Of a DNA stretch of 64,000 nt, positions 9,191 to 60,375 are shown one piece after another. The notes under the pieces were generated by a model. The model saw only the letters and a list, made by a program, of their open reading frames with translations. It made no database searches and was not told where the DNA came from. Position numbers and translations under genes: made by a program. The stretch's first letter is position 1. The number at the start of each line of letters is the position of its first letter. The stretch is taken from the NCBI GenBank assembly GCA_047495785.1, contig JBLDXI010000021.1, positions 1,364,001 to 1,428,000 of the forward strand, read 5' to 3'. The DNA comes from Lepidodermella squamata (Eukaryota > Animalia > Gastrotricha).

Positions 9191-12050
9191 CAGCTTGGAA
9201 CATTCGTCACTTAGCTCAGGTAAAAACAACGCCTTGCACACAACGCCTTGGTATGTTCGCTTGAGACAAGAAACAGACGAGAAGCGCTCAACCGCCTCGC
9301 AATGGTCGGGTGAGAGCGTCGTCTCGCAATGCCCGATTTCTAAAATATTTTTGGAATCTTATTTCACTCAAAAATAATTCATAATCCTTTATCTGAGGGC
9401 AGATGAAATAGACCCAAAATGTGCATCCTATTACCTGCTGTAGTGCATCCTATTAAATTTTAAATTCTGCTTTGTTGATAGATTATTTTACTTCAACATT
9501 TACTCGAAGTCGCCTCTTTAGTTATAGCTGATTGGATATTGGATACTGATTGGGAATCGGAAATGGAAAATTGGCGAAATTCTGGCAAAAGATCGCTGCT
9601 ATACTATTGCTGAGTGCTGGCTATTTCGATAATATATTCAACCTGTTATCGCCATTTTTGTTGAAAAAATGTGATGAATTATTCTCTTGCTTTACTTGCT
9701 TTGTTCATTTTCGATTTATTTCGGTGCGTTGAAAATAAAGGTGTACGGTAACGGGTCACGGCAGCAGTCGAGCAGGTCTAGCCCTACACTGGGGTTTCAG
9801 GGCTACAACGTCCTTGTGGCAGGGCCAGAATTCATGGCTCCTGAGCCTGATCAGGTTGCTGAACCTTCAACGGGGCTACTATGAAAGGGCCAGAGAGAAG
9901 GGCTGGTCTAGGGCTACTATGCTGGGCCTATCAATCTCGGGTCATCATAGACCTGAATCACAAAACTTAGCGAATCGGCGAGATAAGAATCAGAAACACG
10001 AAAACCCAGTCGAACGCCGGTGACATTGGTGGAGACGTAAGGGTGAGCTACTGGTCATATCAACGGTGTCACGATGATATCAACGCCAAATTTAAAAAAG
10101 TTCAAACTAATTTTTTTCCGGGTCCAGAAAATGGTGACTCCAAACTGGGGCGTGTCGATAGCGGGGATGCATTTTAAGATCTATTTGCATAATTTCAAAA
10201 GATCCACCTTAATGGTAATTTTTACAACATTTGAATGATGCATGTTCGAATTTTGCACTTTTCTCCTAATTTGGAAGAAGAAATTCTTAGTCTTTACGAT
10301 CATCTATTTGTCGTGGGTTAGGCGCCTAAAATAGAAACAAATGGCGAAAACCTATGCATCTTTGCTTCTGCGCCAAGTCAGTCGCGTGCCAAATCGCTGA
10401 AAAAAACTAAACGACAGATTTTCTTCTCAAAAAAAGCATGAAGCCATTTGCTTTTATTTCTGGCAACCCACCCAACGACTAATTATAGCCTCCTTTCAAC
10501 CTTCTTTATCTCAATCGGGTTTTAAATTACAACTATGGGTTGAAAAATCGTTATAGGATGGGTTGAAAAATTCGTAGGCTTCACACGTCATTTGTTCATT
10601 TAAATCTGCCATGCCTTCAGCAAATTCTTTACTTCTTATTGTAAAAACTGCCACGTCTGGCGAGGGTCGTTATGTGCCACGGCCTTTACGCATTTTTTGG
10701 GTCGGCGGTGCGCATTATTAGGGGGTAATAAAAACATTTGCACGCGCGCACTTGCAAGACACGTTGCTCATTATTACTTCATTCGCTTGTCGTCGACATT
10801 CTTTCATAACATTCAAAAATTACGTTCGCTAGCCAGAAAGCTTTACGTTATTATTTTCCCTATTTTTGCGTTGCCTATGGCGATTGATTAATTTCTGATG
10901 TCTATTTTCAGAATTGTTTTGTGAGTTCATTTAAATTGGCCATTAATAAGATGTGCATGCCGAGGCGCATTAAGAATTCTCTTGGTAATTTCTCCGAAGT
11001 TTAAACCGTCGCATCTTGACTTAGTTTTAGCAGGAAACCCAGCGAATTTTGAGCCGTTTCAAGTTCCGATTACACTACGTCTTTCGCTCTGGTAAGCAGA
11101 GTTGTACTCAAGTTACGAGTTTTTCCTTGCTACTTTTCTTGCCATTCGAAGGTTGAGCGAACTTGGCATTCGATTGGCATTCGATTGTAAGCTTTGAGCT
11201 TTTAATTTTTGTAGTTGACCTATTTTTTGCTTTCAGATGATGCATGTGATTCATTTCCGAGGATCGGCTGGCAAGGCTTGAAAATCGTTGACGCCCCATC
11301 GTGTTTTTGACCGGAACTATGGGAAAGAAGCTGTTGGGCTGGCAAGGCCTCTTCTCATGGTAAGCTATTATCTCATCTGAACGGTTCAATCGACTCGTTC
11401 AACAACTGTTTCATTGCTTTCCGATTTTTAATCAAAGCTTATTTTCCGGCCTAGGTTCCACAGTTATGGCTTTTGCCGAAGGAGGCGGCTTTGCCGCGAA
11501 GTTCGGATGAAGGTTCCTGGCAATGCCTTGTTGATTTGGTCTGGCTCTAATTGGCGATGGACTGGGCAGAGTTGTTGGTGAAATCAGAGCTGGCGATGAA
11601 TACGACCCTGTCAGTTGCGTTGGTTGCGACGGCGGACATGACGGCAACAACAACAACTTGAACCTGATGAGCTGAGCGAGTTCCGCGTTTTGGTCGTACG
11701 CGACTCGGTGGTGAAATGGTGAAAAAGCAAGGACAGTGACGATGAACAGAGCTACGATGGACAAAGAAAGAACAGAATCGAGGTCTAATCTTATCCTTCT
11801 CTATCTCTCTCACCTCTCAAAGTTATTATTTTGACTCGTTACTCGCGCTAATTTATGATCGCTAATCTTCTAATCTATCTAACTCTTGTGATTTGTGCCT
11901 TAATCTCTTATTTGTGACATTGCGACATTGCTCATGTCTGCAGTATTTCCGATCTAAATTTCCAAATAATCAATTTTTATTATGTTTCTCGTGCCTCTGT
12001 CTCTCGTTCACTAATTATGATTTGTTGTGCCTCAATAACTCGATATATAC

Positions 12051-12253
12051 TGTGACCGGCGGTCACTTGGCTGGCACGCGCCCGTCGCTGCACCCGTGCC
12101 AAGGGTCCACCTGTCGCATCCCGCCAACCCGGAGTCGCGTGCCCTCAGGTTATATAAACTGGCCCTATGTGGCCCTGAACGACAGTTATCTAGTTGCTAC
12201 GAATAAAGCTGTTTGGTTGCTATTTTGTGTTAGTTAAACCGGGGACCCTCACA
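12051..12253 (+). repeat. 5' LTR
   Basis: TGTGACC...CCTCACA, containing TATATAAA and AATAAA. Direct repeat of 18630-18832. Confidence 0.97.
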
Positions 12254-12254
12254 C

Positions 12255-12272
12255 TGGCACCGAGACCCGGAA
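12255..12272 (+). other. Primer binding site (tRNA identity unresolved)
   Basis: TGGCACCGAGACCCGGAA starts 1 nt after the 5' LTR; TGG complements the tRNA CCA end. Confidence 0.8.
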
Positions 12273-12343
12273 GTTGGCTGTAATCGTAGCAATTTTTTTT
12301 TCTCTTTACTTGGTTGATTAAGGTTGAAGGTTGATAAAGGTTG

Positions 12344-13411
12344 ATGGCTAGCTTTCAAGGAGCTACGCTGAAAACCCTGCCCACGGAGGATTCGACCATT
12401 CCTCAGGTTGGAAAATTCGTGCTTGGCAGGCAAACGCTCACGGATTTCTTAATTGAAGCCGAGAGTGTGTGGTTGGCGCGCAAGGTCCCGCCTTTGGCGT
12501 GGATAAATGCGCTAAGGTTGGCACTCCCTGGCCAGCTCATGCTGGACATGGACCGCATAATGGTTGACGTCGACCCTCGTACTGCGTCGTACGAGACGGT
12601 CAAAAGAGCGCTGATCAAGGCGGTCGACAAGCCACCCACGAAGGAAGAACTCATCACGAAGGCGGCGACAATCAAGCAAAAGCAGAAGCAGCCGGTTGAC
12701 GAACTGATCCGCGAGGTCAGGTTGTTTGGCGAGAAGTTGGTTGAACTAGATGTGCCGCAAGCGCAAGTCGACGGGCACATGGTCGAGACACTGCGCCGAG
12801 CGCTCGCATGCCAGCGCACGCAAGAGAAACTCGCCCGGAAGGTGGTCGCAGGCACTCTAACGTGGGAAGCCGCGTGTGAGATCGCCAGAAGCCAGGAGAA
12901 GGTCGCTGAGAGCATGTCAGAAGTCAACGCCAGGACGGCGAGGGACGAGGAGTTGGAGAAATTACGCAGCATGGTGACTGACCTGGGGTCGAAACTGCAA
13001 GCCCTGGCAGACATGAAGTCGAAGGACCAGGAGCTGATCGCGTTTCAAGACGTGAAGATCCAACAACTTAGCCAGCTCTTACACGTCGCGCAGCAAACGA
13101 GTCGCCAGCCAATCAATTCGAACGTGGGCGCTTGGGGCGGGCCAAGTCCCAGACCGCAGCCGGAAAGCGCCAACAGGCAGCCACCAAGCACGGCGCCGGG
13201 TAGACCGACAACAAGGAGCGCGAGCAACAACAAGCCGGTCTCGGCAACGCCAAGTCGCAATTTCACAGGTTGTTACGCCTGTCGATATCAAGGTCACGTC
13301 GCGCAATACTGCCCGACCACCAAGGAAGGAGCACCGATGGACTCGTGCTACGGTTGTGGGGAGCCTGGTCACGTTCGTCGTGACTGCCCCAAGCCGAACC
13401 AAAATTTGTGA
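12344..13411 (+). CDS. gag: Gag with two C-terminal CCHC zinc knuckles
   Basis: Open ORF with ATG at 12344, a coiled-coil-like middle, CYACRYQGHVAQYC and CYGCGEPGHVRRDC. Confidence 0.93.
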   Translation: MASFQGATLKTLPTEDSTIPQVGKFVLGRQTLTDFLIEAESVWLARKVPPLAWINALRLALPGQLMLDMDRIMVDVDPRTASYETVKRALIKAVDKPPTKEELITKAATIKQKQKQPVDELIREVRLFGEKLVELDVPQAQVDGHMVETLRRALACQRTQEKLARKVVAGTLTWEAACEIARSQEKVAESMSEVNARTARDEELEKLRSMVTDLGSKLQALADMKSKDQELIAFQDVKIQQLSQLLHVAQQTSRQPINSNVGAWGGPSPRPQPESANRQPPSTAPGRPTTRSASNNKPVSATPSRNFTGCYACRYQGHVAQYCPTTKEGAPMDSCYGCGEPGHVRRDCPKPNQNL

Positions 13412-13445
13412 AGAAGGCCCAGCAAGCCAAGGCGGGCGCTGGACC
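13402..13445 (+). promoter_or_regulatory. Putative -1 ribosomal frameshift signal
   Basis: A AAT TTG heptamer (13402-13408) in gag frame directly before the gag stop. After a 7-nt spacer comes the stem ggcccagc/gctggacc. Pol is in the -1 frame. Confidence 0.65.
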
Positions 13446-16400
13446 GAAGTTGGCGGGTTCAGCGCAGAAGACGGAGGAGAAGAAGGTTGAAGAGGTTGAA
13501 GGTAGAATGAAAGCAGCTGAGGTTGACAATAAGGTTGTAAATAACGGCTGGAGTGACAAATTTCCAAGAAATTTCAGTGGTTGTGTGGTAAGAAAGCTTA
13601 AGGACGGTAAATACGTCTACGCGTTAGGTGACGGCTTCAAGTGCGTTCCTTCGGATACATTCCTGGCAGTAAACGTGCTCATGAAGAACGGTCAGAAAGT
13701 CCTGACGTTGGTAGATTGCGGCTCTACGATGTCTCTGGTTAGCGAGGAGGTGGCAAAGGCGTTCAACTTGTCCGTCACCAAAGCCATCACTTACAAGCTG
13801 ACCACGGCTGACAGTGGCCGTTTGAACACGATGGGTTGCGGAGAGGTGGACTTTCATCTTGGAAATTTGAAGTTCAGCCAAAACGTTCAGGTAGTTAAAA
13901 ATCTCAGCTGCGGGTTGTTGCTGGGCCTTGATTTTCTCATCAGGAATCGGGCAATGGTTGATTTCCATGAAGGCAGGATCATTTTTCAGAACCGTCATAG
14001 CAGCAGCTGGAGCGTTCAGATGCCTAAGGTTGAGAAACACGGAAACGTCATGACCGTGCTCAATGCAGAAATAGGGTGGGAGCAACCGGCTCTACCTTAC
14101 TTGCGCAAAAGGTCGGAAGAATGGTTCCAGGATTGCGAAGACGACGAGCCACGAGAAGAAGGTGAAGATGATAGCGCACTCTTTCCACCAGACGGGTCGA
14201 AGGTTGAAGAATTGAGCGCGGTTGAAGTAGGTAGCGAGATATCGGACGAGGCCAAGGCAAAGCTGTTCAAGCTGATTGGGGACTACAGCGACTGTTTCTC
14301 GTTCGACGGCAAGGTGAAAGAGACCAAGTCGGCAACGTTTTCGATCAAGATAACGAACCCAGCAGCAAAACCGGTCAAGGCCGAGCCTCGAAGGCGGTCC
14401 GAGAAAGACCAAGAATTCATCGCCAAGAAGTTCAAGCAACTGGAAGAACAAGGAATTGTCGTCAAAACAAACACACCCTGGATAAGCGAGGTTGTACTCG
14501 AAAAGACGAAGGATCCGGAGAATCCTAGGGTAGCAATCGATTTGACGCCGATCAACGATTTGACGGAAGATGAGTCTCAAGAAATACCGCTGATGGCCGA
14601 CTTGTTGGAAAAAGCCGCTGGACACAAGTTCTACTGCGTACTAGATATGCAAAGCGCTTACTGGGCCATTCCGGTCGACAAAGAATCGCAAAAGTACCTC
14701 GGGGTAAGGACCAGAGACGGCCACTATGCGTTTACGCGCATGCCTTTCGGGTTGAAAAATGCCGGCACAGTCTATTGCCGAATGATCAGCAAGGTTCTGG
14801 ACGGGTTGACTTACAAGATCCTGGTCTATTACATGGACGATGTTGTTATCTGGGGTGACACCGAGGAAGAAATGCTCGCGAGGTTGAAGGAGACGCTTGA
14901 CAGATTTCGCAGCCACGACCTGCAGATCAAACCGTCAAAGTGTAAGTTGTTTCAGCGCAAAATCAAGTTCATCGGGCACGAAATCTCTGAGGATGGTATC
15001 TGGGCGCTGCCGAAGCATCTCGAAGCCATTAGAAACTATGAGTTACCGACAACGCCGAAGAAAATGCGCGCTTTTCTAGGATTGGCGAGCTTCCTCAGAG
15101 GCTTCACGGCCAACATCACTGAGATGACCGCCCCTCTGCGGGACGCGGCGAATGAAAGTGGTAAACAGATCAGGTGGACAGCAGAAAGGTTGAATGCGTT
15201 CAATAACGTCAAGGAAGCGTTTCTGAAAGCTCCAGTTCTGGGCGTTCCAGATCTCAACAAACCGTTTGTCGTTTACACGGACGCTTCAAACATTGGCATC
15301 GGCGCCCTATTGTGTCAGGAGCAGGAGGGAAAGCTAAGGTTGATTTCGTCGGCGAGTCGGTCTCTCGACAAGGCCGAACGCCGCTATTCGACGATTCATC
15401 GCGAAGCATTGGCCATCTATTGGGCGGTCACGAAGAGATTCAAGGTCTATCTGCATGATCGTTTCGAGCTGCGAACGGATCATCGGCCACTAACCTGGCT
15501 AATGTCGTTCAAAGACCCTCCCCCGAAACTCTGGCGGTGGATACACGAACTTCAGCAGTTCAAATTCGACGCAGTTTACGTACCAGGCACGAAGCAATAC
15601 GCCGATGCCCTCACGAGATGCTTTCCGGAAAAGCTGGAAGAAGAAAGCCACGGTTGTTGTAACATGATTTCCAAGGAGTGCTTCCAAATCGACATGAAAG
15701 AATTGCGGAGTGAGCAGTTGGTTGACGACGAAATCGGACCCGCAATAAGGGCGAAGTCGGGTGGTCAAAAGGTAGAAAGTGGCGACTGGCGCACGCTTTT
15801 GGTGGCCCGAGAGGACAACGACTTGGTTGAGGACGCTGCAAGGGAAGGCGTCTGGTGCAAAAAGTTGGCAACGGGTGAGTTGGCCATTGTTGTACCAAAG
15901 AAATTGCGCCCTCTGATTTTGTACCATTCGCACGACTCACCCAACGGTGGACACGTCGGATACCGCAAGGCTATCAGACGAATTCGGGATCAGTTTTGGT
16001 GGCCAGGAATGTTGTCTGACGTCAAAACGCACTGCCAAGGTTGCGCGACATGCCAACTCAGGAAGGCGAGTACGGTAGCGACGAAAGGCCCGCTCAAGTC
16101 ACTGGATGCGAAATCCCCGTTTGAAATGATTTCGATTGATTTCGTCGGACCGCTACCCCGAACACGGCGTGGCAACAGGTGGATACTTACAGTGGTCGAC
16201 CATTACACGAAGTGGGCGCAAGCTTATCCCACACGTAATCGAACAGCGGAGACGGTTGCCAGCTGCTTGAAGAAGTTCTTCGCCGATCATGGTGTGTGCG
16301 AGAGGTTGTTGTCGGATCGAGGGGCCGAGTTCGAATCGGACCTGATCGACAAACTGTGTGACGCGTACGCGATCAGAAAAGCACGTACGTCAGCATACAC

Positions 16401-17220
16401 GCCATGGGCGAACGGTGTGTGCGAGCGCTTCAACCGCACAATCGGGGACATGTTGGCGACAATGGCGGTTAAGTGGCGCAAGGACTGGGACGACAACATC
16501 TCGCAGGCGCTCAGCGCCTACAGGTCGACGCCGCACGAGGCGACGGGCAAAACACCTTACATGATGGTGTACGGCCGCGAAATGCCACAGCCTCATTACT
16601 GGTTGGCTGGATCTGGCTCAGTGGCGACTAGCAGCCCTAACCCGGTGGACTATGTTCAGACGCTGCAAGAACAGCTACGACAAGTATGGGACGAAGCAAC
16701 GTTGGCACTTCAGGCGGCTAGGTTGAAGCGGGAACAGCACTACAACAAGGCCATTGCCGATCCAAAACGTTTCGCGGTGGGCGACAAAGTCCGCAGGTTG
16801 ATTGATGTCCGAGAAAACGGAAAATGGGCGGACAGATTCGAAGGGCCATTCGAAATCGTGCGCGTCCCGGAAGAAGGCAACCACGTCTGGCTTATCGACA
16901 AGGCCGGTAACGAAGTTTCGGTAAATGTCCGCAAGCTAATCCACTGGCGTGAACGGCCGAGCAACGTGTGTGTCTTCGGAGAAACGGTTGCACCACCACA
17001 ACAGGACCAAATGCAGCCTGCGGCGACGCATCAGGTAGAAAATCGCCAACTGGCATTGGTCCCGGTCAACCAGGTCGACAACGCAGAGGTGCCGGTAGCA
17101 GTCGAAACCCGAGGTAGACGAACTCGCAGTCGGCCAGCGTGGATGGACAACGGCCAGTGGGTCCTAAGTGTGCTGAGTCAAGTAGCGAAGGTGTTCTTTC
17201 AAGATGAAGTGCCGAAATAA
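13408..17220 (+). CDS. pol: Pol polyprotein (protease, RT, RNase H, integrase)
   Basis: LVDCGS protease, MPFGLKNA and YMDD RT, YTDAS RNase H, HHCC plus IDFVGP/SDRG/ERFNRT integrase, GPF motif. 1270 codons uninterrupted. Confidence 0.97.
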   Translation: MKKAQQAKAGAGPKLAGSAQKTEEKKVEEVEGRMKAAEVDNKVVNNGWSDKFPRNFSGCVVRKLKDGKYVYALGDGFKCVPSDTFLAVNVLMKNGQKVLTLVDCGSTMSLVSEEVAKAFNLSVTKAITYKLTTADSGRLNTMGCGEVDFHLGNLKFSQNVQVVKNLSCGLLLGLDFLIRNRAMVDFHEGRIIFQNRHSSSWSVQMPKVEKHGNVMTVLNAEIGWEQPALPYLRKRSEEWFQDCEDDEPREEGEDDSALFPPDGSKVEELSAVEVGSEISDEAKAKLFKLIGDYSDCFSFDGKVKETKSATFSIKITNPAAKPVKAEPRRRSEKDQEFIAKKFKQLEEQGIVVKTNTPWISEVVLEKTKDPENPRVAIDLTPINDLTEDESQEIPLMADLLEKAAGHKFYCVLDMQSAYWAIPVDKESQKYLGVRTRDGHYAFTRMPFGLKNAGTVYCRMISKVLDGLTYKILVYYMDDVVIWGDTEEEMLARLKETLDRFRSHDLQIKPSKCKLFQRKIKFIGHEISEDGIWALPKHLEAIRNYELPTTPKKMRAFLGLASFLRGFTANITEMTAPLRDAANESGKQIRWTAERLNAFNNVKEAFLKAPVLGVPDLNKPFVVYTDASNIGIGALLCQEQEGKLRLISSASRSLDKAERRYSTIHREALAIYWAVTKRFKVYLHDRFELRTDHRPLTWLMSFKDPPPKLWRWIHELQQFKFDAVYVPGTKQYADALTRCFPEKLEEESHGCCNMISKECFQIDMKELRSEQLVDDEIGPAIRAKSGGQKVESGDWRTLLVAREDNDLVEDAAREGVWCKKLATGELAIVVPKKLRPLILYHSHDSPNGGHVGYRKAIRRIRDQFWWPGMLSDVKTHCQGCATCQLRKASTVATKGPLKSLDAKSPFEMISIDFVGPLPRTRRGNRWILTVVDHYTKWAQAYPTRNRTAETVASCLKKFFADHGVCERLLSDRGAEFESDLIDKLCDAYAIRKARTSAYTPWANGVCERFNRTIGDMLATMAVKWRKDWDDNISQALSAYRSTPHEATGKTPYMMVYGREMPQPHYWLAGSGSVATSSPNPVDYVQTLQEQLRQVWDEATLALQAARLKREQHYNKAIADPKRFAVGDKVRRLIDVRENGKWADRFEGPFEIVRVPEEGNHVWLIDKAGNEVSVNVRKLIHWRERPSNVCVFGETVAPPQQDQMQPAATHQVENRQLALVPVNQVDNAEVPVAVETRGRRTRSRPAWMDNGQWVLSVLSQVAKVFFQDEVPK

Positions 17221-17804
17221 GGTTGAGAGGTTGTTTATGTGGAAAGATGGTTGTGGAAAGGTGGTTTTTCCTGCGTGAAGAAGTCGGTTTCCTTTGGTGG
17301 CCAGTTGGGGCCAGGGCTCGCTATCTCAGCGGGACATGAACTTACCGACTAACATTTCTTTGTCCATTTACGTTTTCATTGTCATCATGCTTCCTTTTTG
17401 GTTGACCTAATCAACAGTTCACGGGATCGCCCTGAACACTTTACGCTATCGATGGCATTAAATTTTTACGCGTTGGTTGTGCCGTAGCAATGTTGTTCGG
17501 CGTAATTAGTCGTTTTAAAAGTTGTGATATAGCTGTTGTGTGTGTGTGTGGATCCGGTGGTATTACAATTCGAGGTTGTTTACAACATTTTCCAACGAAT
17601 CAAATCGATTTTGAGCGTACGTTACATCAATGGCGGCCCGGCAAGTGTTAGTAAACAGGCCGTGAAGCGCGCGAATAGCAGAAACGCGCGCCTCAGGTTG
17701 CATAACATTCGCAGGATAGGCGCGTGGCGGTGTCGAGTATATTAAACACGGAAAATCAAGTGATTGGCAATCGCTACTCGTCTGAATTAACTACTGCCCC
17801 AGCA

Positions 17805-18326
17805 ATGAACGCGAAGGTAGGCCGGCTCACCGAGAAACTAACAAACGTTATCGCCGACAACATAGGTGAAGTTTCGGCGTTCGACCTCAGCGAGGTTTTT
17901 GAAAATCTCTCAGCGAAACTCGCAGAGAAAGCTAAGTCAATACAAGCCAAGGTTGAAGAAAAGAGAGCCGCAAAGCCGGAAGTCGCGTCGGTAATCTATC
18001 AAATTAAAGTCGAAAGAAAACCAGCGACCAAGCGTCTCGGGCCGAAGCAAGGGTCAAGCCGTCAAGCTGCGCTGGATCGAGCGAGCAAGTGCCGCTTCTG
18101 TGGAGCAGGGTGGCACCGCCCGATATTCTGTCGAGTCGCCGCCAAGACCACCAGGTGCGACTTCTGCAAGGAGAAGGGGCACTTCAGCTGCAACTGCCCA
18201 AAGAAGATATGCAGAGGGTGCGGCGAGCGTGGCCACATCGTCAACAATTGCCCCAAGGACGCTAACGCCGGCAAGTGTTTCAGATGCGGCAGAACGGGCC
18301 ACTTCAAACGTGAATGTCGAGGTTGA
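17805..18326 (+). CDS. ORF3 of the LTR element: basic protein with four CCHC zinc knuckles
   Basis: CRFCGAGWHRPIFC, CDFCKEKGHFSCNC, CRGCGERGHIVNNC and CFRCGRTGHFKREC. First ATG is 17805 (frame open from 17724). Lies between pol and the PPT. Confidence 0.85.
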   Translation: MNAKVGRLTEKLTNVIADNIGEVSAFDLSEVFENLSAKLAEKAKSIQAKVEEKRAAKPEVASVIYQIKVERKPATKRLGPKQGSSRQAALDRASKCRFCGAGWHRPIFCRVAAKTTRCDFCKEKGHFSCNCPKKICRGCGERGHIVNNCPKDANAGKCFRCGRTGHFKRECRG

Positions 18327-18616
18327 ACGGTCGCAACATTTCTGGTCCTGACGCCATCGCCATCGTCGAGGTAGAATTGCCGTAACACTTCTGGTACGCT
18401 ATAATTGGAAGTTGATTTTTTCCGTGTTGGTATTGCAGTAGGCGTCTTATTCGTTGTAATATAGTGTTGTACAATTTGGTGATATAACCGTGTTGTGAGA
18501 ATATTGTAATATAATTTGGCTGTTTTTTCCGATGATTTGTTCTCACTCGGTTTTTTTTTCCTGCTGATGCTTCTTTGTCAGGTGAATGGGCGAAAATTCG
18601 TAAACGAATTTTGATT

Positions 18617-18629
18617 GGGGTGGGGGGTG
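18617..18629 (+). other. Polypurine tract
   Basis: GGGGTGGGGGGTG immediately precedes the 3' LTR. Confidence 0.8.
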
Positions 18630-18832
18630 TGTGACCGGCGGTCACTTGGCTGGCACGCGCCCGTCGCTGCACCCGTGCCAAGGGACCACCTGTCGCATCC
18701 CGCCAACCCGGAGTCGCGTGCCCTCAGGTTATATAAACTGGCCCTATGTGGCCCTGAACGACAGTTATCTAGTTGCTACGAATAAAGCTGTTTGGTTGCT
18801 ATTTTGTGTTAGTTAAACCGGGGACCCTCACA
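18630..18832 (+). repeat. 3' LTR
   Basis: Identical to the 5' LTR except A18685 versus T12106. Confidence 0.97.
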
Positions 18833-19357
18833 TATACTTAACAATAAATAAAAAGAATGCAACTGCAACTGGACGTGTTTTCGGCCAGGGTACCGGGGTA
18901 AAACGGGGGTAACCGAGATCCGGGAAAAATCTGGAGCAAAAGTCCTGTCACAGGCCTAGACTAGGTCTGTACCCTGCTGGGCCCTTTCTGGCTAGGCCTA
19001 CGGCACGGGAAATCTTGGCCCTGCGGTAGGCCCGGTAGGTAAAATGCCGCTGGACCTAACCCAGGCCTAAACCCTCCCGACTGGATCGTTTTCTACGATC
19101 GAAGAATTCCCAAAAAGCGCGAGAAAGAATTATAGAAAGGATAGGCGAAGAAGCTGACTTTCTCTTTTCTCTTCAAGAGTCCAAGAACGCAAGATTAGCA
19201 ATCGCAGCTAATGGCAATTTATAGCCCTTGAACCGAAGATAGTAATTTGGAATGCAACCGCTCCGCAGTTGTAAACACCGCAACAAATGTGGAAAACTCA
19301 TTTTTCAAGGGGTGTCTGAAGATTGTCTGGAGTTAAAGCTTTGGTTCTATGCCAATT

Positions 19358-38866: not shown

Positions 38867-39124
38867 ATTTGGATATAAAATTATTAAAAGAGTCAAGCCT
38901 ATCAACAAATCAAAGCAAGTTTATTGGCAAGTTGTTATCGAAAATCATTTAAAATTATTTCGTTTTTTTCAATCGATCGGGAATTCGAATCACAATTTTG
39001 AGTACCGTATTGAAACAATTGCAGCAAAATTAACAATCAACAATATTTTGAATATCCATGTAAAGCAGTAAGAAAAGACGGTATAAATACTAGGTAAGAA
39101 AACGAGTCGTTTCACTCTGTTGTT

Positions 39125-41319
39125 TTAGTCTTGAATCGAGACGACTTGAATCTCGTTGGCATTATCAACAAGTGGCGGTATTATTTTGACGTTATCGAAT
39201 TGCGCGAGGCTGAAATCTCGAGTGCCCATGCCAACGAACCCGTTTTTAACGTCCCTGGCCTCGTTTTTCAACTGGCAATTCGAGATAACTTTAGCGTTGT
39301 TCACCAACAACGTAGCTTGCGGTCCAGACAGAGAAATGCCCAGGTTAAACCAGCCATTTTTACCGCCTGGTAGAGAATCAAATGAAAAGTTGGCCTTGCA
39401 CGTCGGGTTTAGCGCCATCAAACGTTCGGTAATGTAAACAGTATTGTCCTTAGGCGAGGCCCAGGCGAAAACACCGGCTGTTGTGAAAGTCATGCAGCCG
39501 CCGTGTTGAATTCTAGCACCAATATACGCAGAATCGGTGGCGTTAACCGCCGGGAACATCATATCTGACGAGTAGTAAATATCTGACCAGTTGTAATTTC
39601 CGAAAACGGCAAGGGGCCGTAAATTCGGAATCGTGCACCACGTAACCGGCGGTTGAAGTAGCATTTGCTGCAACACTCGGCCGTGCTTCGCATCAGCAGC
39701 TTGCTGGACCTCGAAAACGCCAACTTGCTGCTGAATGTACCGGCCCTCGGCATCAATCGGGGTCGATTCGAAATCGTCCGAATACGGGTACGGGAAGTCT
39801 TTAGACGGCAACGGGCCGTTGAGATCATCGCCCTCAAGCGACCCCTTCCGACCAGGGGCAACCGTGGTGAGGGTGATCAACTGATTAGCAGCAACTGCGA
39901 CTCTGAAAGTCAAATCCGTACCGACTTGAATCGCGGGTTTCGAGACAAACATCTCGCCCGTTGACAAATCTGAAAGTCTGACGTAAAGTTTTGGCGGTGA
40001 TTGAAATTTCCAGTTAGCCAATGAAAACGCAAGGGTTTGATTCGTAATAGTCGGGTAGGGATTAATCGCAGGCCTAACGCAGGCTGATTGGTAGTAATCG
40101 ATTGTTTCAATGACAACAGTGAAGAATTGTTGATCGGGTGAAACCAGGGTGACATAACTACCGCCACCCCCTGGCAACATGCCAACACCACTTCCGTGGG
40201 CAAGGTACACCCAGCCGGGTTGCGTGAATTGGGTAGTATGAGCTGTCAACCAAACTGGGTCGTCAATGTTGTACCAACCACCCCACGGCTGGTTCGCAGT
40301 CAATAGGCCAGTCCTCGGGTAGTCCAAATTGTCGTAAAATGCCGAAATAATATTGAAAATATACGTCGTTGTGAAGAGGCCCGTCACGTAATTTCTGTTC
40401 AAAATCCGAGCAATGCAGCCATTTTTTGTCGTCCTAGCATCCGTACTGTCGTCCTCGCTTGAAACAAGGGCTTGAGGCAAGTTTTGAGCTCGAGGCGGCG
40501 CGTAACCTCCCGGGTAATGGATCGCAATTTTCGAGATCATCTTAGCTAGATCGGCGTCTGTGGTTAAATAATCGATGATTTCCCAGTGGTTATCGCCGGC
40601 TACGATTTCGGTTTTCAAATTATTCTCCTGGATGCGATGGTACAGTGCTTTCATGTAAGGGACATGTTCTGGTTTTTCATTCCAAATACCAACGTAATCG
40701 ATATCGAGATTCCAGTACTTTTTAGCGCCTTTGATCCAGCTTACAATGCTAGAAAAATAAAGAGAAAATAGCTATAATTAACGATATTAAGGTGGGACGT
40801 ACTAATCAGCAGTTTTATTCAAGCTGGCGAATGGAATGAAATGAGACCCATTACCCAGCCAGCCTGGGAAGCACCACGGCAAGCCATACAGCTTGATATT
40901 CGGATTTCGTTTCTTCGCCTCGGACATCATCCAAAATTCGTAGCCGCGCTGGAAGTTGCCTTCAGTCTCCCATTCGTAGTGGCGATGGGAACTCTCGACC
41001 CCTTGCGTTGTCTGGTCATCTCCACCGATTTCGACCTTGAACAATTGGAGCGAAGCGCCGAAACGCGGCTTGAATAAATAGTCGAGAATTTCGGAGCGTT
41101 GCGGCTCAGGATAAAGGGGCAGCATTCTAGCCACAGCCTTAAAATTCACATTTTAAATATGAAAATCAAGAAATATTTAATACCTACCCCTCCACCGCTG
41201 ATGGCGCCTACTCCTTCGAAAACTCTACCACGGCTCGATAGATCCACCTTAAAGGTTGTTGCATCGATAAATCGAGCAGTAGCACATATAGCAAATATAC
41301 TTAAAAGTAACTGCCGCAT
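39125..41319 (-). CDS. GALC: Galactocerebrosidase (GH59), three exons
   Basis: [72 protein letters not shown]. Confidence 0.95.
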
Positions 41320-48097: not shown

Positions 48098-51000
48098 ATG
48101 AAAAACACCTTGACGCCGCGAATGGCGATTCCGATAATGGAATCCCTACCGTGGCTCGGTTTTGTGTTGCTGTTATTGATGTCTTCGGCGACAGCAGCAC
48201 CCATTGGCTCCACACAAAACAGCAAATCTATCGACCCTGTTGATCCTAAATACGCCGAGCTGGTTATGCAAGCGCAATGCCAAGCTCAATGCCTCGTTAA
48301 GGTAGCTTTGAAATTCTACAAAAAACTTACGTTAATCACGTTTTATTTAGACAGGGGAGCTTACTCGCTCGATCGACATTTTACTATTACCGATCTACAC
48401 TTGCACGAACGAGAAATGCCGGCAATGCTCAGCGCCATGCGACACTGACATCATCAACCTCGTTTCGCCTGCGACCTGCAAAGCTTCGAAATGCGTGAGT
48501 TTTCTGCTAAAATTGAGAAAATAGCGTCAAACCGTTTCTTCAACAGTCGCCGAGGGATAAATTGTGCCACGAAAGTTGCCAGCTGAGATTTCGATTGAAG
48601 CAGCAGCATGTGGAAAGCCAACAACTACCTGTTGCGGCAAATGCCCTAAATTTACAGGTTCAACCGCCGGAAATGCTGTGCGTTGACGATTCAGGCTCGC
48701 CAACGGCTGCGGCAAACTACGACTACGACGCTCAGTCTCTCAATGCGTTAATGGGAAAACCCAGTCGCCAACCGGCACATCACACCCAGAGAACAGGTCG
48801 TTCTCTCACCCTCCGCTGGTTGGCTCGATTCGACGACGGGGATCAAAATAATTCAACGTCGAAACTGTCAACCCAAGGTCAACCGCCGGCTGTTGTTTCT
48901 GTCGTCACGATGCGGCGGGTTAACAGCAAAAAGACGACAATAATAGGAAAGGCAAGCTATACAAAATATTTTGTTTGCAATTTTTAAACCTTTTTTGTCT
49001 AGAATGTTGGGCAGGTAATTACGCTGACCTATTTAAAGCCTGGGCAGTCGTACATTTTCGAAGTAACTTCGGTTACGGCCGACGGTATTCTGCTGCCTCC
49101 AGTATCTAGCCAACCAATCGAAATCCCAGCAAGTCCGTGGCAAGGCGACGAAAAAGTTTCTCTGTTCGCGCCAAACACTGGCAGAATCGTCACCAACTAC
49201 TTTCTTGGCACAGCTTCGAAGCCCAGTCTTGGTGTATACGTCGACTGGAAATCCGATCCGAAAATTCAAAGCTGCTACTACGAAGTTTTCGTGCTGAAGA
49301 ACGAGGTTGAAAACGCTGTCAATGATGGTTCGAACTCGCCACCGTCCAGCAGTTACCATCACGTGAGGGCCCGAACCAAAGAAATGCACAACGTCCTGCT
49401 TGTCGACGGCCTCGATTTCAACGCCAACTACACCGTTAGAGTTTTCACATCGGACCGTCTTTATCGATATCAGAGCGAGTCTTCTTTGGACCTTCATCTC
49501 GTTACGCCGTCGTGTCTAGAGGCAACGGGGCATAATTACACCCTATGCGGGCCTGAGCCGCCAGTAAACGCGACAGGCGAATTTTTCTGCTACCAAGAGC
49601 CTGTAATTGTCGCGAATTCAACTTCGAATTCAACAGCTGGCAACTCGACTGAAATCGCTGAAGTTCGATCGCGGCTTTCTCTTCTCGTCAACTGGACGAT
49701 GTTTCTCGAGGGTCAAGCCGAACCTAGCTCGGATTTCGGCTTCGAAATCAACGTTGCGAATGACCCGATTCCTGAATTAATTGGCGCGGTTGAAATGCCG
49801 AGCGACTGGAAAACGTTCACGGTTCAAAACACGTCCTCGTTGATAATAGACTATGTTTTGCCGAACCAGCTGTACTTCGTCGAAATTCGGACATTACTGG
49901 CGGGCAAACGCAGTCGCGCTTTGATTCTACGCCTCACATCTCCCGGTTCCAAGTCGTCGCTGTGCTCAACTAGCGAATCTATGGGCCAATCTAGCGACTA
50001 CGTCGATGCAGCTGTTTCGACTATTGGAGAATGGGCCTTGGGACGGGGAATCCAGAAGCCGATTCAGCGATCCAATGTCGCCAGAGAGTTGACGATATCG
50101 TTCACGGTGCTTCTTGTTTTCGCCATTGTCTTCATCGGTCTAGCTTCCTATTGGCTCAGACGAGCTCGCCTTGTGAAACAGGCCAAACACATAGTCGAGG
50201 TATGTTTAGTATAGCTGTCACCTGTATTCAGGAAATTAATTTTATTTTAATTAGCAGACTGTGCCGATGAAATGCTCTGCCCTCTACGAGATGACCGCGG
50301 CTGTCAATCAAAAGTTCGATCGTTTCGAAGTAACGTGGACCGAACTGACTCTACTGCCTCACGTCTTGGGTGAAGGCGCATTCGGTAAAGTGATTCATGG
50401 CCAGTTATTGGCACCCGAACTGACAAACTCCGATGGCGCCGTTGACGTAGCCGTTAAAATGTTGCGAGACAACGCCACCGACGAGGAACGAGTCAATTTA
50501 CTAGCAGAAATCGAAACGATGAAACGTGTTCGGCAGGTTTGCGGTGAACATCCCAATGTTGTCTCTCTCGTCGCCTGCGTTACCCGAAACGGCTTGTGCA
50601 CCCAACCGGCTTTAGTCATGGACCTATGCCCGTTCGGCTCGCTGCGTGACTATCTGCGCCAACTTCGCGGGAAAGGCCCTCGAGAAATCGCGAGTCTTTG
50701 CGGTGGGAAGGCGAATGCTTTGTTCAAAATGCCGCACAATTACCCAGCCATGCGTGTCACCGCAACTGCGCAATCAATCGATACCGCTCAGACTATTGAT
50801 GGCATCTCGCAGGCTGAACGAATGTTGCTGCTGACCTTGGAGAAGCAAGGCATCGGACCACAGATTCATAGACCAAAGTCTGGTTCTTGCTCGACAACAT
50901 GCACAATGGACGTTGGACCTGATCAAAATCCGCCGCTTTTCATGCTTCTGTTGTCCTTTGCTCGTCAAATCGCTGCTGGTATGGAACACCTTGCCATTCA

Positions 51001-51799
51001 CAAATTCGTCCACCGTGACCTGGCGACGCGAAACGTTCTAGTCTACGATTTCGATCAAGTCAAAATAAGCGATTTCGGGTTGTCGCGTGACATCTATGAA
51101 GATCAGAAGTACCAGAAAAGCACGGCAGGTCGGTTGCCAATCAAATGGATGGCGCCTGAGGCGATTATCGATCAAACCTACACGACAGCGAGCGATGTTT
51201 GGTCTTATGGAATTGTTCTATGGGAATTGGTCACCCTAGGTGCGACGCCTTATTGCCTTGTCCTGAATCAAGACTTGCCGAGACTGTTACGAGGTGGCCA
51301 TCGCCTTGAACGGCCTGATAACTGCCCGGATGATTTGTACGCCCTAATGTCGGCTTGTTGGGCCATGCAGCCTGATTCTCGGCCTAGCTTCACCACCCTC
51401 CTCGAACAGGTCGAATCGCTGCAGTCGAAGGCCGAGCGAAACCTGGCTACAAGTGTCTACGAACTCGAAGATTACGTGACGATGAAAACGCGACTTGCAA
51501 GCATCGGCAGTGGTCGGTTGGCCAGCGATGATACGATGCGGCCGCCTACCCTGCGCGGTTTAGACAAGTCTAAGCGATACTTTTTCGCCGATGACGAAGA
51601 CTCGACTACGCCGAAAGATGCGGAAAAGACCGCACCTCGGCACGTGACCTCGTTGACTGCGCGTGCTCCTAGCAACGCCTACACGCGCCTCGTGGCCCCG
51701 AACGGCGAGGTCAGCGATTCTGACGATGCGGATGATTCGGCTTTCACCGTTCCGGCAAGTGACGATTCGTGCCTCGTGAAATCACCAGCCATGGTTTAA
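48098..51799 (+). CDS. Receptor tyrosine kinase with Cys-rich N-terminus, FN3-like ectodomain and split kinase (Torso/RET-like)
   Basis: Signal peptide, AQCQAQCL and CHESC motifs, TM segment near 50095-50155, then LGEGAFGKV, VAVKML, HRDLATRN, DFGLSRDIY, GRLPIKWMAPE, with a long kinase insert. Confidence 0.85.
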
Positions 51800-58098: not shown

Positions 58099-60375
58099 TT
58101 AGAATGAAATCTCGATGGAGTTCGGATATGCAGCAATGTACTGCGTCTTATCGACGCTAAAGAGAACACATGGTAACACAGATGAACGTATTGCGCTGAG
58201 TTTGAATTCATCATATTGCGAAGAGTTTGTTTCATAATTGCCCTTTCGAATTGAAGCACATTTGATGTGGCGACGATCTTCGCGACGTCTGTTGAGAACC
58301 ACAGACCGCGTACGAAAAGTAACATCTCCATTTGCAAATTTGAAAGATGAAATTCGATAGTAACGCGAGTTGATGCAAACGATATCACCAGATAACAAGG
58401 TAACATCCCTACCCTTCTCTTGAAGAGGAGTGCGTAGTTTGTCATAAGAGGATCCTTCTGGGGTTATTTTGTCCATCAAAACCCCGCCGCCAAAAGAGTC
58501 GGAGAAACTGATCGCGCCATTAGTTCCGCAATCAACAAATCGCTTCACAATCGCAGAAAAAGAATGGTTTTTTGTGATAAAATTTCGCAATAAATCACGT
58601 TGGGCATTGACACGAGCGGTACAGCGACCGTCTTTGACAATTACAGATTGCAATTGATCAAGAATGAGAAAGCGGTCAGCCAGCTGATCACAGACTCCAT
58701 TAGGGCTTTGTAGTTGCCTAACAGCATGACCCAGAAACGACTCGAACTCGAATGCAGAGTAAAGATGAAGAGGTCCGTATTTGTTAACGAAATATGGAAG
58801 GTGTGATACGAGATGAACGTTAAGATCCATAAAGTGAATGCCGTACAGAGCCTCGCTTTCCCTCATCCAATCGTTAACATCTCTTTCCAGTACCGCAATA
58901 TCAGGTTTCAAGGACAGTGCGACGTGAATAATGCTACTGAGCAGTCGAAAGTGCCGTATCTTCCGGTCGTCATCCATTAGAAACTCCATCACAATAGGCC
59001 CGTAATACAAGAGAAAAGCGCGATACTCGCTGGCTTTTAAATCGCTATATTTCGAAATAGGGAATTGAAAACGATTACAATCCGCGGGCAGCTTGATAAC
59101 ATTGACCAGATTGTCGATGGTTCTCCAACGAGGAATCGCCGTTTTGCCCTTGAACCATATCTTCATTAAAGTTTTAACGACGCCCAAGCATACGAAGTGC
59201 ATGTAGTCGGGTGGGAAAGATAAAATGAGGTCAAAATAAGGAATCCGAAAAATTATAGTAAAACCCTTGGAACCGCAAAATTTGCGGTTTTTCGGATTCG
59301 AAATTTGATCCGCTTTCGCTCCTTGAGCCCGAAATTGCGCATCAGTTCGCATTTCGTAATGGCCACAAGGATAGACAATTTTGCGCTTCGGGCGCTTTAT
59401 GTGAACTCCGGGAATATTACAATAAGGGCACGCAAAGTAGCCACCATGGTGTATTGCGTTTCGAACGTCGGCTTTTGCGGGAGTATCGGTGATTGCGAAG
59501 ACACAAAACAATCGAACAACCTGACGACCAATTTTCACCCCAGTTGAACAAAGAGTGATGAGCTCGTCGACAAAAAATTTCAGAACGACAGATGGGTTCG
59601 GAGTTGATTTTACCGCACACCATGCAGTACTTAGTATTCGGTATTTCACGCCTTCGAACTGGACAACTAGGAGCCAGACTGAAGAGGCGTAGGGTGAAAC
59701 TCCGTCAAAAAACCACCTGAAAGGCAAGGTGATGTTGGTATCAACAACCGAGTGATTGACCAGCTGAAGTCGCTGAATAATTCGTGGGAGCCGGGGTGTC
59801 AAAGGTGAAAACACTCCAGCCCCACCATGCTGACATTTCTTACATTTCGATACCGATTTCATCAGTTGAGTATCTGTTGTCACAGTTGCTCCATTGCAAT
59901 TGCAGCCGGCGAATTTGATCAGCTTATCCCTGTCGAAAATTGTTGTTTTGAATAAATATTTAGAACCGCATAACTTTTCGAATAGCTTCTTTGGCAATCC
60001 GAGGTCGATCATACGTGTCCAATCAATCACGGCTTCCCAGCTCATTTTGTGGCGAACCATCATAGCCAAAACCAGCAGCACCGCAGTCACAAAGTAGACA
60101 GGAGTTTCCGGACTCAATGGAACATCCCACTTTAAAACATCACTGTAAGCCACAAAGTCTGAAAAATTATCAATCAAGTCAGCCGTGTAAGAGGTCTGAG
60201 GCCATTGAACTGAATCGCCAGAATCGACCCCTTCTGTGTAGCTTATGAAAAAGTCGTCGTCAACAACTTGAATAACTGGCTCAACATTCACGTTAGGCGG
60301 GTTTATGGCGGATTTTCGGTACTTTTTCAAGGTGTTGTAGGAGATTCGATCCGAGAACGTAACTTTTTTCGGCAT
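58099..60375 (-). CDS. CMC/EnSpm-type DDE transposase, intronless, 758 aa
   Basis: FFDG, ITDTPAKA, GGYFACPYC, DYMHFVCLG, KASEYRAFLLY, NVHLVSHL...GPL...SAFEFES. Confidence 0.92.
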   Translation of the reverse strand: MPKKVTFSDRISYNTLKKYRKSAINPPNVNVEPVIQVVDDDFFISYTEGVDSGDSVQWPQTSYTADLIDNFSDFVAYSDVLKWDVPLSPETPVYFVTAVLLVLAMMVRHKMSWEAVIDWTRMIDLGLPKKLFEKLCGSKYLFKTTIFDRDKLIKFAGCNCNGATVTTDTQLMKSVSKCKKCQHGGAGVFSPLTPRLPRIIQRLQLVNHSVVDTNITLPFRWFFDGVSPYASSVWLLVVQFEGVKYRILSTAWCAVKSTPNPSVVLKFFVDELITLCSTGVKIGRQVVRLFCVFAITDTPAKADVRNAIHHGGYFACPYCNIPGVHIKRPKRKIVYPCGHYEMRTDAQFRAQGAKADQISNPKNRKFCGSKGFTIIFRIPYFDLILSFPPDYMHFVCLGVVKTLMKIWFKGKTAIPRWRTIDNLVNVIKLPADCNRFQFPISKYSDLKASEYRAFLLYYGPIVMEFLMDDDRKIRHFRLLSSIIHVALSLKPDIAVLERDVNDWMRESEALYGIHFMDLNVHLVSHLPYFVNKYGPLHLYSAFEFESFLGHAVRQLQSPNGVCDQLADRFLILDQLQSVIVKDGRCTARVNAQRDLLRNFITKNHSFSAIVKRFVDCGTNGAISFSDSFGGGVLMDKITPEGSSYDKLRTPLQEKGRDVTLLSGDIVCINSRYYRISSFKFANGDVTFRTRSVVLNRRREDRRHIKCASIRKGNYETNSSQYDEFKLSAIRSSVLPCVLFSVDKTQYIAAYPNSIEISF

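Follow-up and report, generated by a model that had tools for sequence, protein, structure and literature searches.

A strand-specific GGTTG word written through a Ty3/gypsy retrotransposon of the gastrotrich Lepidodermella squamata, and its possible role as a set of dispersed RNA recognition sites

We analysed a 64,000-nt stretch of the genome of Lepidodermella squamata (GenBank assembly GCA_047495785.1, contig JBLDXI010000021.1, positions 1,364,001 to 1,428,000 of the forward strand; this whole stretch is called the window below, and all positions are given within it). At 12051-18832 (+ strand) the window carries a complete Ty3/gypsy long terminal repeat (LTR) retrotransposon, for which the LTRs, the target site duplication (TSD), the primer binding site (PBS), the polypurine tract (PPT), gag, pol and a third open reading frame (ORF3) have all been located. 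The sense strand of this element is filled with the short word GGTTG. The signal is specific to one strand and to the element, it is made by synonymous choice, and a related form of it is found in a sister element (L001, a metagenome contig); stem-loops, splice sites and base composition do not explain it.

Structure of the element

The element appears intact, and it shows the features by which Ty3/gypsy (Metaviridae) elements are recognized, namely a pair of TG...CA LTRs with a TSD, a PBS and a PPT, CCHC knuckles in gag, and the domain order protease, reverse transcriptase (RT), RNase H and integrase in pol. The two LTRs are identical at 202 of 203 positions (the sole difference lies at 12106). 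The features are as follows.

12046..12050, no strand: TSD TATAC, 5' copy (3' copy at 18833-18837), from direct reading of the sequence
12051..12253, + strand: 5' LTR, 203 bp, TG...CA, from a repeat search; it contains a TATA box near 12152, AATAAA at 12203 and a single GGTTG at 12215
12255..12270, + strand: PBS TGGCACCGAGACCCGG, adjoining the 5' LTR end (the counterpart at this place in L001 is TGGCGCCGAGACCCGG)
12312..12343, + strand: leader group of four GGTTGA copies in about 28-32 nt, in the PBS-to-gag interval; the final copy touches the gag ATG
12344..13411, + strand: gag, 355 amino acids (aa), with two C-terminal CCHC knuckles, from ORF and domain searches
13402..13408, + strand: candidate -1 frameshift heptamer A_AAT_TTG, directly 5' of the gag stop codon TGA (13409-13411), from three-frame translation
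13408..17220, + strand: pol (protease, RT, RNase H, integrase), from Pfam
17221..17804, + strand: non-coding spacer between pol and ORF3, 584 nt, with 7 GGTTG
17805..18326, + strand: ORF3, 173 aa from the ATG at 17805 (the frame is open since 17724), from a domain search; the ATG aligns with the start of L001 ORF3
18617..18629, + strand: PPT GGGGTGGGGGGTG, adjoining the 3' LTR
18630..18832, + strand: 3' LTR, from the repeat search and LTR alignment

The pol frame is -1 relative to gag, and the stop codon of ORF3 (TGA) falls within a GGTTGA. With the two of Gag and the four of ORF3, the element encodes six CCHC knuckles. A TATA-like stretch (GTATATTAAA) at 17736-17746, about 60 nt 5' of the ORF3 ATG, is a possible internal promoter. 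The pol-ORF3 spacer also holds a (TG)n microsatellite near 17537-17551, which explains an excess of TGTGTG. Antisense ORFs of 90-200 aa lie over gag and pol on the - strand (e.g. 12403-13014) and probably arise from the skewed composition of the sense strand.

Enrichment and strand bias of the word

An earlier note on this DNA, made from its letters, had counted about 27 sense copies of AGGTTG across the element where about 2 would be expected. Both figures hold: all 27 listed sites are exact + strand matches (starts at 12321, 12328, 12338, 12405, 12515, 12719, 13267, 13484, 13493, 13520, 13532, 14027, 14201, 14489, 14881, 15187, 15337, 16038, 16303, 16720, 16795, 17220, 17228, 17573, 17695, 17950 and 18320), and base or dinucleotide composition predicts 1.7 to 2.2 copies. 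AGGTTG and GGTTGA, with 27 copies each, are the commonest hexamers of 12311-18326, followed by GAAGAA with 16. In 2000 dinucleotide-preserving shuffles of this region AGGTTG occurred 2.17±1.45 times and never more than 8 times (z about 17); the Poisson tail is 1.4e-20, or about 1e-16 when corrected for 8192 oriented hexamers.

The core of the word is GGTTG, which is found 51 times on the sense strand of the whole element and 6 times on the antisense strand (as CAACC), while dinucleotide shuffles give 8.3±2.8 sense copies. The internal region (12312..18325) contains 49 GGTTG, 27 AGGTTG, 27 GGTTGA and 16 AGGTTGA, the last compared with 0.6 expected. A is preferred on both sides of the core: it precedes 27 copies and follows 27, with T following another 13. 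Single-base variants of GGTTGA at positions 1, 2, 3 and 5 are essentially missing, and position 4 is tolerant at a lower level (8 GGTCGA, 7 GGTAGA and 6 GGTGGA), so that the general form GGT.GA reaches 48 copies (8.3±2.8 in shuffles). AGGTAG is also over-represented (8 vs 1.0). The reported absence of antisense CAACCT is correct, with zero copies in 12311-18326, but it is uninformative and not significant, because only about 1.0 is expected; CAACC stands at its expected level (4 vs 6.5).

The word belongs to the element and not to its surroundings. The rest of the window, taken as host DNA, has 14 AGGTTG on the sense and 15 on the antisense strand, a density of 0.25 per kb per strand compared with 4.2 per kb in the element. 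Two syntenic contigs of a related host (L005 and L006) show neither enrichment nor strand bias of the word.

Coding constraint and distribution along the element

We shuffled synonymous codons in the ORFs so that the proteins and the element's own codon usage were preserved. The enrichment persists under this model, with 19 AGGTTG in the ORFs vs 4.5±1.9, and 37 GGTTG vs 12.3±2.9 (z about 8). The claim that the word occurs in every codon phase as well as in non-coding DNA was also borne out: 18 GGTTG lie in phase 2, 13 in phase 1, 6 in phase 0 and 14 in non-coding DNA, where the density is about 12 per kb compared with about 6.8 per kb in coding sequence. Among the 78 amino-acid contexts that permit GGTTG, 37 encode it (12.4 are expected from the codon usage of the element), and so do 13 of the 20 pairs in which Arg, Gly or Trp is followed by Leu. 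The same preference is seen at the wobble position of Val codons, where T is used in 13 of 23 G_GTN_GA contexts and in 25 of 114 Val codons elsewhere (Fisher P=0.0016).

The spacing of GGTTG along the element is near random and Poisson-like (coefficient of variation 0.91, P=0.66). The earlier note had seen clusters in the 5' leader, after the frameshift site and at the pol and ORF3 stops, and only a 5' bias remains of this picture: 11 of the 49 GGTTG of the internal region fall in its first 500 nt (P=0.002, uncorrected). Given the element-wide density, the leader group of four copies is borderline (scan-statistic P about 0.06) and the post-frameshift cluster is not significant (scan-statistic P=0.28). 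The copies at the two stops are not distinct from the high overall density and have no counterpart in L001. ORF3 and the 3' untranslated region are sparse in GGTTG (2 vs 7 expected, P=0.03).

A sister element with a related word

An exhaustive HMMER profile search of 1.84 billion representative proteins found a sole close relative of the pol protein, P0001, at 62% identity (all others are at most 37% identical), and a word search was concordant. P0001 sits on L001, a 7.15-kb metagenome contig in ENA that holds a circularly collapsed gag-pol-ORF3 element. L001 has the same PBS type as the window element and an identical 20-nt sequence over the PPT-LTR junction; the gag proteins share 34% identity, and its ORF3 is a four-knuckle homologue with 50% identity over the knuckle region. 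Further relatives were not found by protein-pattern scans of JGI metagenomes and IMG/VR, by a word search with ORF3, or by a PPT-junction pattern in IMG/VR. A PBS-junction DNA pattern gave 9 matches in JGI metagenomes (all unrelated bacterial DNA), and exact look-ups of the window pol, gag and ORF3 gave no matches.

GGTTG itself is not abundant in L001 (13 sense, 13 antisense), where the enriched words are the neighboring variants: GGTCGA (17-18 sense vs 1 antisense), GGTAGA (10-11 vs 1), AGGTAG (11-12 vs 0) and GGT.GAA (28-30 vs 1). GGT.GA occurs 35 times vs 5.8±2.2 in shuffles, and 28 times in the ORFs vs 15.6±2.8 in synonymous shuffles; GGT[ACT]GAA occurs 26 times vs 1.6±1.2. Copies are also found outside the genes of L001, with two GGTAGA just 5' of the ORF3 ATG and three copies 3' of the ORF3 stop. 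Judging from these two sequences, the signal at the level of the clade is (A)GGTNGA(A), with an N that is strongly and context-specifically T in the window element and mostly C or A in L001. A differing central base between sisters would fit a fast-evolving reader.

When the two pol genes are aligned by codon, 12 GGT.G sites fall in a common column (0.5 expected). The window and L001 pol genes have 55 and 33 GGT.G sites, most of them lineage-specific and often on identical amino acids, e.g. Arg-Leu written AGG TTG in the window element and CGA CTA in L001, or Trp-Leu written TGG TTG and TGG CTA. This pattern of turnover suggests many interchangeable weak sites held at a high number, not a few fixed structural elements.

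Distant Ty3/gypsy elements

Five distant Ty3/gypsy elements (L002, L003, L004, L016 and L017; pol identity at most 36%) were used as outgroups. Neither a knuckle ORF3 nor GGTNGA enrichment was found in any of the five, although the contig of L004 ends right after pol. L004 is the nearest outgroup, on a long branch in a quick tree, and lacks the word. L016 has a third ORF of 248 aa, which is unrelated to ORF3. In L003 the hexamer GTACCT is in excess (9 sense vs 0.5 expected), mostly as xxG TAC CTx, i.e., Tyr-Leu, so that this excess is driven by amino acids.

ORF3 and predicted RNA structure

ORF3 consists of a helical and basic N-terminal half followed by four retroviral-type CCHC knuckles. 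Its best match among solved structures is the nucleocapsid (NC) region of Gag from HIV-1 (human immunodeficiency virus type 1), with the two C-terminal knuckles aligning with HIV-1 NC in a Gag fragment, and it also matches Air2 and Lin28. Homology and structure searches detected no homology of ORF3 to Rev or to CERV of the retrotransposon Cer1, nor to known factors. The L001 homologue has an RS repeat (RSRSRSRSRS; L001:6100-6150, residues about 100-115) just before its four knuckles, a layout like that of SR proteins, and the window ORF3 has a basic non-RS stretch at this place. L001 also has a strong tract resembling a 3' splice site (TCTTTTTCATTTTTTAG; L001:5745-5800), which lies about 30 nt 5' of the ATG of its ORF3, with the two GGTAGA mentioned above between tract and ATG; this tract suggests that ORF3 may be translated from a spliced subgenomic mRNA. 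In the window element the corresponding signals are indistinct. With the RS repeat and the acceptor-like tract of L001, a role of ORF3 in export or splicing similar to that of Rev, CERV or SR proteins is possible.

The targets of CCHC knuckles are exposed guanosines within short words (GGAG, GGUG, UCUG); many such sites are found in retroviral leaders, and HIV-1 has more than two dozen NC sites (PMC7599994). In the window element, predicted local accessibility gives the motif the same unpaired probability as controls with three G and two U (P=0.13), the leader folds no better than shuffles, and the motif regions are predicted to be weakly structured. Presentation of the word in stem-loops thus has no support from accessibility or leader folds. 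The predicted weak structure argues against packaging signals of the stem-loop kind and would suit single-strand binders such as knuckles.

Other features of the window

The genes in the remainder of the window include GALC-like, ZER1-like and tyrosine-kinase genes (the best named matches of the first are from molluscs, at about 40%). The galactocerebrosidase-like gene at 39083-41137 (- strand) has almost no introns; a single short intron-like stretch in it contains in-frame stops. L005 and L006, two ENA metagenome contigs with a tandem duplication of GALC, keep the order ZER1-like gene, unknown gene, GALC. The tyrosine-kinase gene at 49291-51799 (+ strand) has a 59-nt intron (GTATGT...TTAATTAG, about 50201-50259), which indicates that introns in this host are very short and that their donors are canonical. 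An ORF of 758 aa at 58099-60375 (- strand) has a weak match to Transposase_21 (tnp2) below the Pfam cut-off and may be a DNA-transposon remnant.

No Rfam families or tRNA genes were found in the 64-kb window. In the literature, matches to AGGUUG are all let-7, which resembles the word (GAGGUAG, AGGUUG) on the same strand and is not complementary to it; we take this likeness to be a coincidence. Presumably coincidental, too, are the same-strand likenesses to the 5' end and the GGUUCGAAGA stretch of 18S rRNA, and to the tRNA T-arm or B-box GGTTCGA.

Possible readers of the word

The word keeps to one strand, ignores the reading frame, is denser in non-coding DNA, turns over its sites while their number is kept, and is concentrated in the PBS-to-gag leader of both elements. 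Together these facts indicate a selected signal on one strand, and the sense RNA is its obvious carrier. Its action as RNA, its reading by a knuckle protein and the outcome of that reading are our inferences. In the reading that we favor, the copies are distributed single-stranded RNA sites for a CCHC protein of the element (Gag NC and/or ORF3) that mark genomic RNA; on the sequence evidence, we consider this quite possible, if still short of probable. The full-length sense RNA would bear a selected and dense GGUUG signal, mostly (A)GGUUGA, as the local version of GGUNGA(A), present in the 5' leader and the spacers as well as in nearly half of the permissive codon contexts. Each copy would serve as a single-stranded site for a guanosine-recognizing knuckle protein of the element, which may be the two-knuckle NC end of Gag, the four-knuckle ORF3, or both, and many weak sites would sum to selective capture of genomic RNA, be it for packaging or for the export or chaperoning of unspliced RNA.

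The earlier note had proposed such an RNA signal, read by ORF3 or by Gag NC. The signal part of this proposal fared well (it is strand- and element-specific, resists shuffling and recurs in L001), but nothing favors ORF3 over Gag NC or a host RNA-binding protein. The expected co-occurrence with ORF3 is seen in that L001, with a homologous ORF3, has a related word and the outgroups are without GGTNGA; the comparison covers a single clade, and since the signal is present in only two elements, its link with ORF3 amounts to one evolutionary event. Several further points weigh against a reading by the element's knuckles. L016, which has no knuckle ORF3, contains 9 sense AGGTTG vs 2.2±1.5 (1 antisense); the flanks differ there (mostly C-AGGTTG-C/G) and GGTTG itself shows no excess (15 vs 11), so the L016 case (L016:596-3555) is either an independent weak one or chance. 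The central base in L001 largely tracks general Val codon usage, so that the case for co-evolving specificity comes chiefly from the preference for T in the window element. The motif is no more accessible than composition-matched controls. Depletion in ORF3 and the 3' region, which would be expected if only unspliced RNA were marked, is present in the window element and not in L001. Finally, the reader could be a host RNA-binding protein.

A host reader would be a recruited splicing enhancer or silencer factor, export adaptor, or germline translation or localization factor, with no reading by the element's own knuckles. Strand-specific, distributed words in synonymous sites do resemble exonic regulatory motifs, and the enhancer-like purine word GAAGAA is also sense-biased (16/1 in the window element and 17/2 in L001); the weak excess in L016 and the signs that splicing control matters in the clade (the RS repeat and acceptor-like tract of L001) point the same way. 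We nevertheless regard a host reader as rather unlikely: neither the window's host DNA nor the syntenic contigs from the related host are enriched in the word or biased for its strand, the sisters prefer different central bases, and the word is not known to match a motif of a host RNA-binding protein. Closer to our favored reading, and less likely again, is the narrower proposal that ORF3 and the GGUNGA(A) word form a clade-private self-recognition pair. ORF3 would then multimerize on unspliced RNA as a Rev-like or SR-like export or packaging adaptor, its base preference having shifted between the sisters (GGUUGA here, GGUCGA/GGUAGA in L001), and related elements in one host lineage would not cross-recognize their RNAs.

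The AG|GU core also raises the possibility of weak U1 small nuclear ribonucleoprotein or 5' splice-site-like sites, acting as decoys or as protection from premature polyadenylation, with the leader copies perhaps serving as donor of an ORF3 mRNA. AGGT is sense-biased in both elements (59/9 here, 38/10 in L001), the leader copies read AAG|GTTGA and AAG|GTAGT, a good acceptor-like tract precedes L001 ORF3, and the internal sense strand of the window element has zero AATAAA. The reading is weak because the host donor is GTATGT (GAG|GTATGT in the window's intron) and the motif mismatches it past the GU: N-G-A-A departs from the canonical positions +3 to +6. Moreover, the preceding A is missing in about half of the GGTTG copies, GGTCGAA in L001 is often preceded by G or C, and the consensus-like donors GTAAGT and GTATGT occur only 0-1 times. 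We rejected splice donors as a general explanation on the mismatch of AG|GTTGA(A) with the host donor, and think the U1 version improbable. Slightly more doubtful still is a service to reverse transcription, through RNase H cut sites, internal plus-strand priming or NC-assisted strand transfer. Strand specificity and even spread would fit a process tracking along the genome, and the flanks are purine-rich, but the word is not purine-only and does not resemble the PPT, its extra density in leader and spacers has no obvious priming role, and our literature searches found no precedent. To the idea that the word has no function and simply follows from base composition, the usage of codons or amino acids, CpG decay or internal duplication we give almost no credence. 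It is true that the sense strand is G-rich and T-poor, that the phase-2 copies coincide with x-Val-Asp/Glu, and that the excess hexamer of L003 is merely Tyr-Leu. Against this stand both kinds of shuffles, the use of three phases and non-coding DNA, and the lack of the word in host DNA and in four of the five outgroups. Codon or amino-acid bias was rejected from the synonymous shuffles and the counts of permissive contexts, and decay of GGTCGA to GGTTGA from an observed/expected CpG ratio of 1.16. Duplication is excluded as a source since the LTR is the sole long repeat and the flanks of the motif copies differ.

Significance

The two elements represent a rare Ty3/gypsy clade with an NC-like accessory ORF, apparently undescribed, with two members found in the 1.84 billion representative proteins. 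In our searches of the literature, we met neither a Ty3/gypsy clade whose third ORF is NC-like nor an LTR retrotransposon saturated with an oriented word. Sets of weak RNA recognition sites for capsid- or NC-type proteins are already known; new here are the scale, the accessory knuckle protein and the use of synonymous sites for the encoding. Should the word prove to be a tag for protein binding, a retroelement can spread an RNA-selection signal over its coding sequence synonymously, instead of relying on one structured leader element. Sister elements with different preferred variants offer a natural specificity-swap experiment for recognition by CCHC knuckles. Saturating oriented words are detectable by simple k-mer statistics, and these may provide a handle on cis-signals in other retroelements.

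Comparison with known systems

The retroviral packaging (Psi) sites, e.g. UCUG of Moloney murine leukemia virus and the GGAG/GGUG loops of HIV-1, are likewise short G-containing words, several of them in the PBS-gag interval. The leader location of an NC-type packaging signal is found in both of our elements, with 4 GGTTGA in this interval of the window element and three AGGTAG in that of L001. Unlike Psi, the word extends, at a density of about 8 per kb, over some 6 kb that include coding and spacer sequence, and it makes use of synonymous sites; the predictions show no RNA structure in support of it, and the element encodes a further knuckle protein (ORF3). Dispersed packaging signals of single-stranded RNA viruses (of the type found in satellite tobacco necrosis virus, MS2 and parechovirus) also consist of many copies of a short word over the genome, weak copies that act jointly (a concept cited in PMC6475782). 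Those words are shown to coat proteins in stem-loops, while the motif here is not preferentially in loops or unpaired, and its carrier is an LTR retrotransposon.

For ORF3, the systems to compare are HIV Rev with its response element (RRE) and CERV, which is required for export of the genomic RNA of Cer1 (PMC10309623). In each case an extra protein is encoded 3' of pol; a spliced mRNA is the probable source of ORF3, judging from the acceptor-like tract of L001, and ORF3 could act on unspliced genomic RNA as they do. Rev reads one structured element, unlike the distributed word here, and CERV differs from ORF3 in having no CCHC knuckles and no described sequence motif. With CNBP/Gis2, Air2, the zinc-knuckle domain (ZKD) of Lin28 and SRSF7, ORF3 shares tandem retroviral-type CCHC knuckles, which in those proteins bind short G-containing single-stranded RNA. 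L001 ORF3 adds the RS repeat of SR proteins, and the window ORF3 is without it. ORF3 differs from all of them in being encoded by an element and in having neither an RNA recognition motif (RRM) nor a cold-shock domain, and to our knowledge none of their known motifs is GGUUGA.

The closest parallel in the manner of writing comes from bacteria. Chi and KOPS (FtsK orienting polar sequences) are short oriented words that are over-represented on one strand of bacterial DNA and written through coding sequence by synonymous choice, and the word described here shares with them both the great excess on one strand and the carriage in synonymous codons. They are, however, DNA signals for bacterial translocases, whereas the present carrier is a eukaryotic retroelement in which the word most likely acts as RNA.

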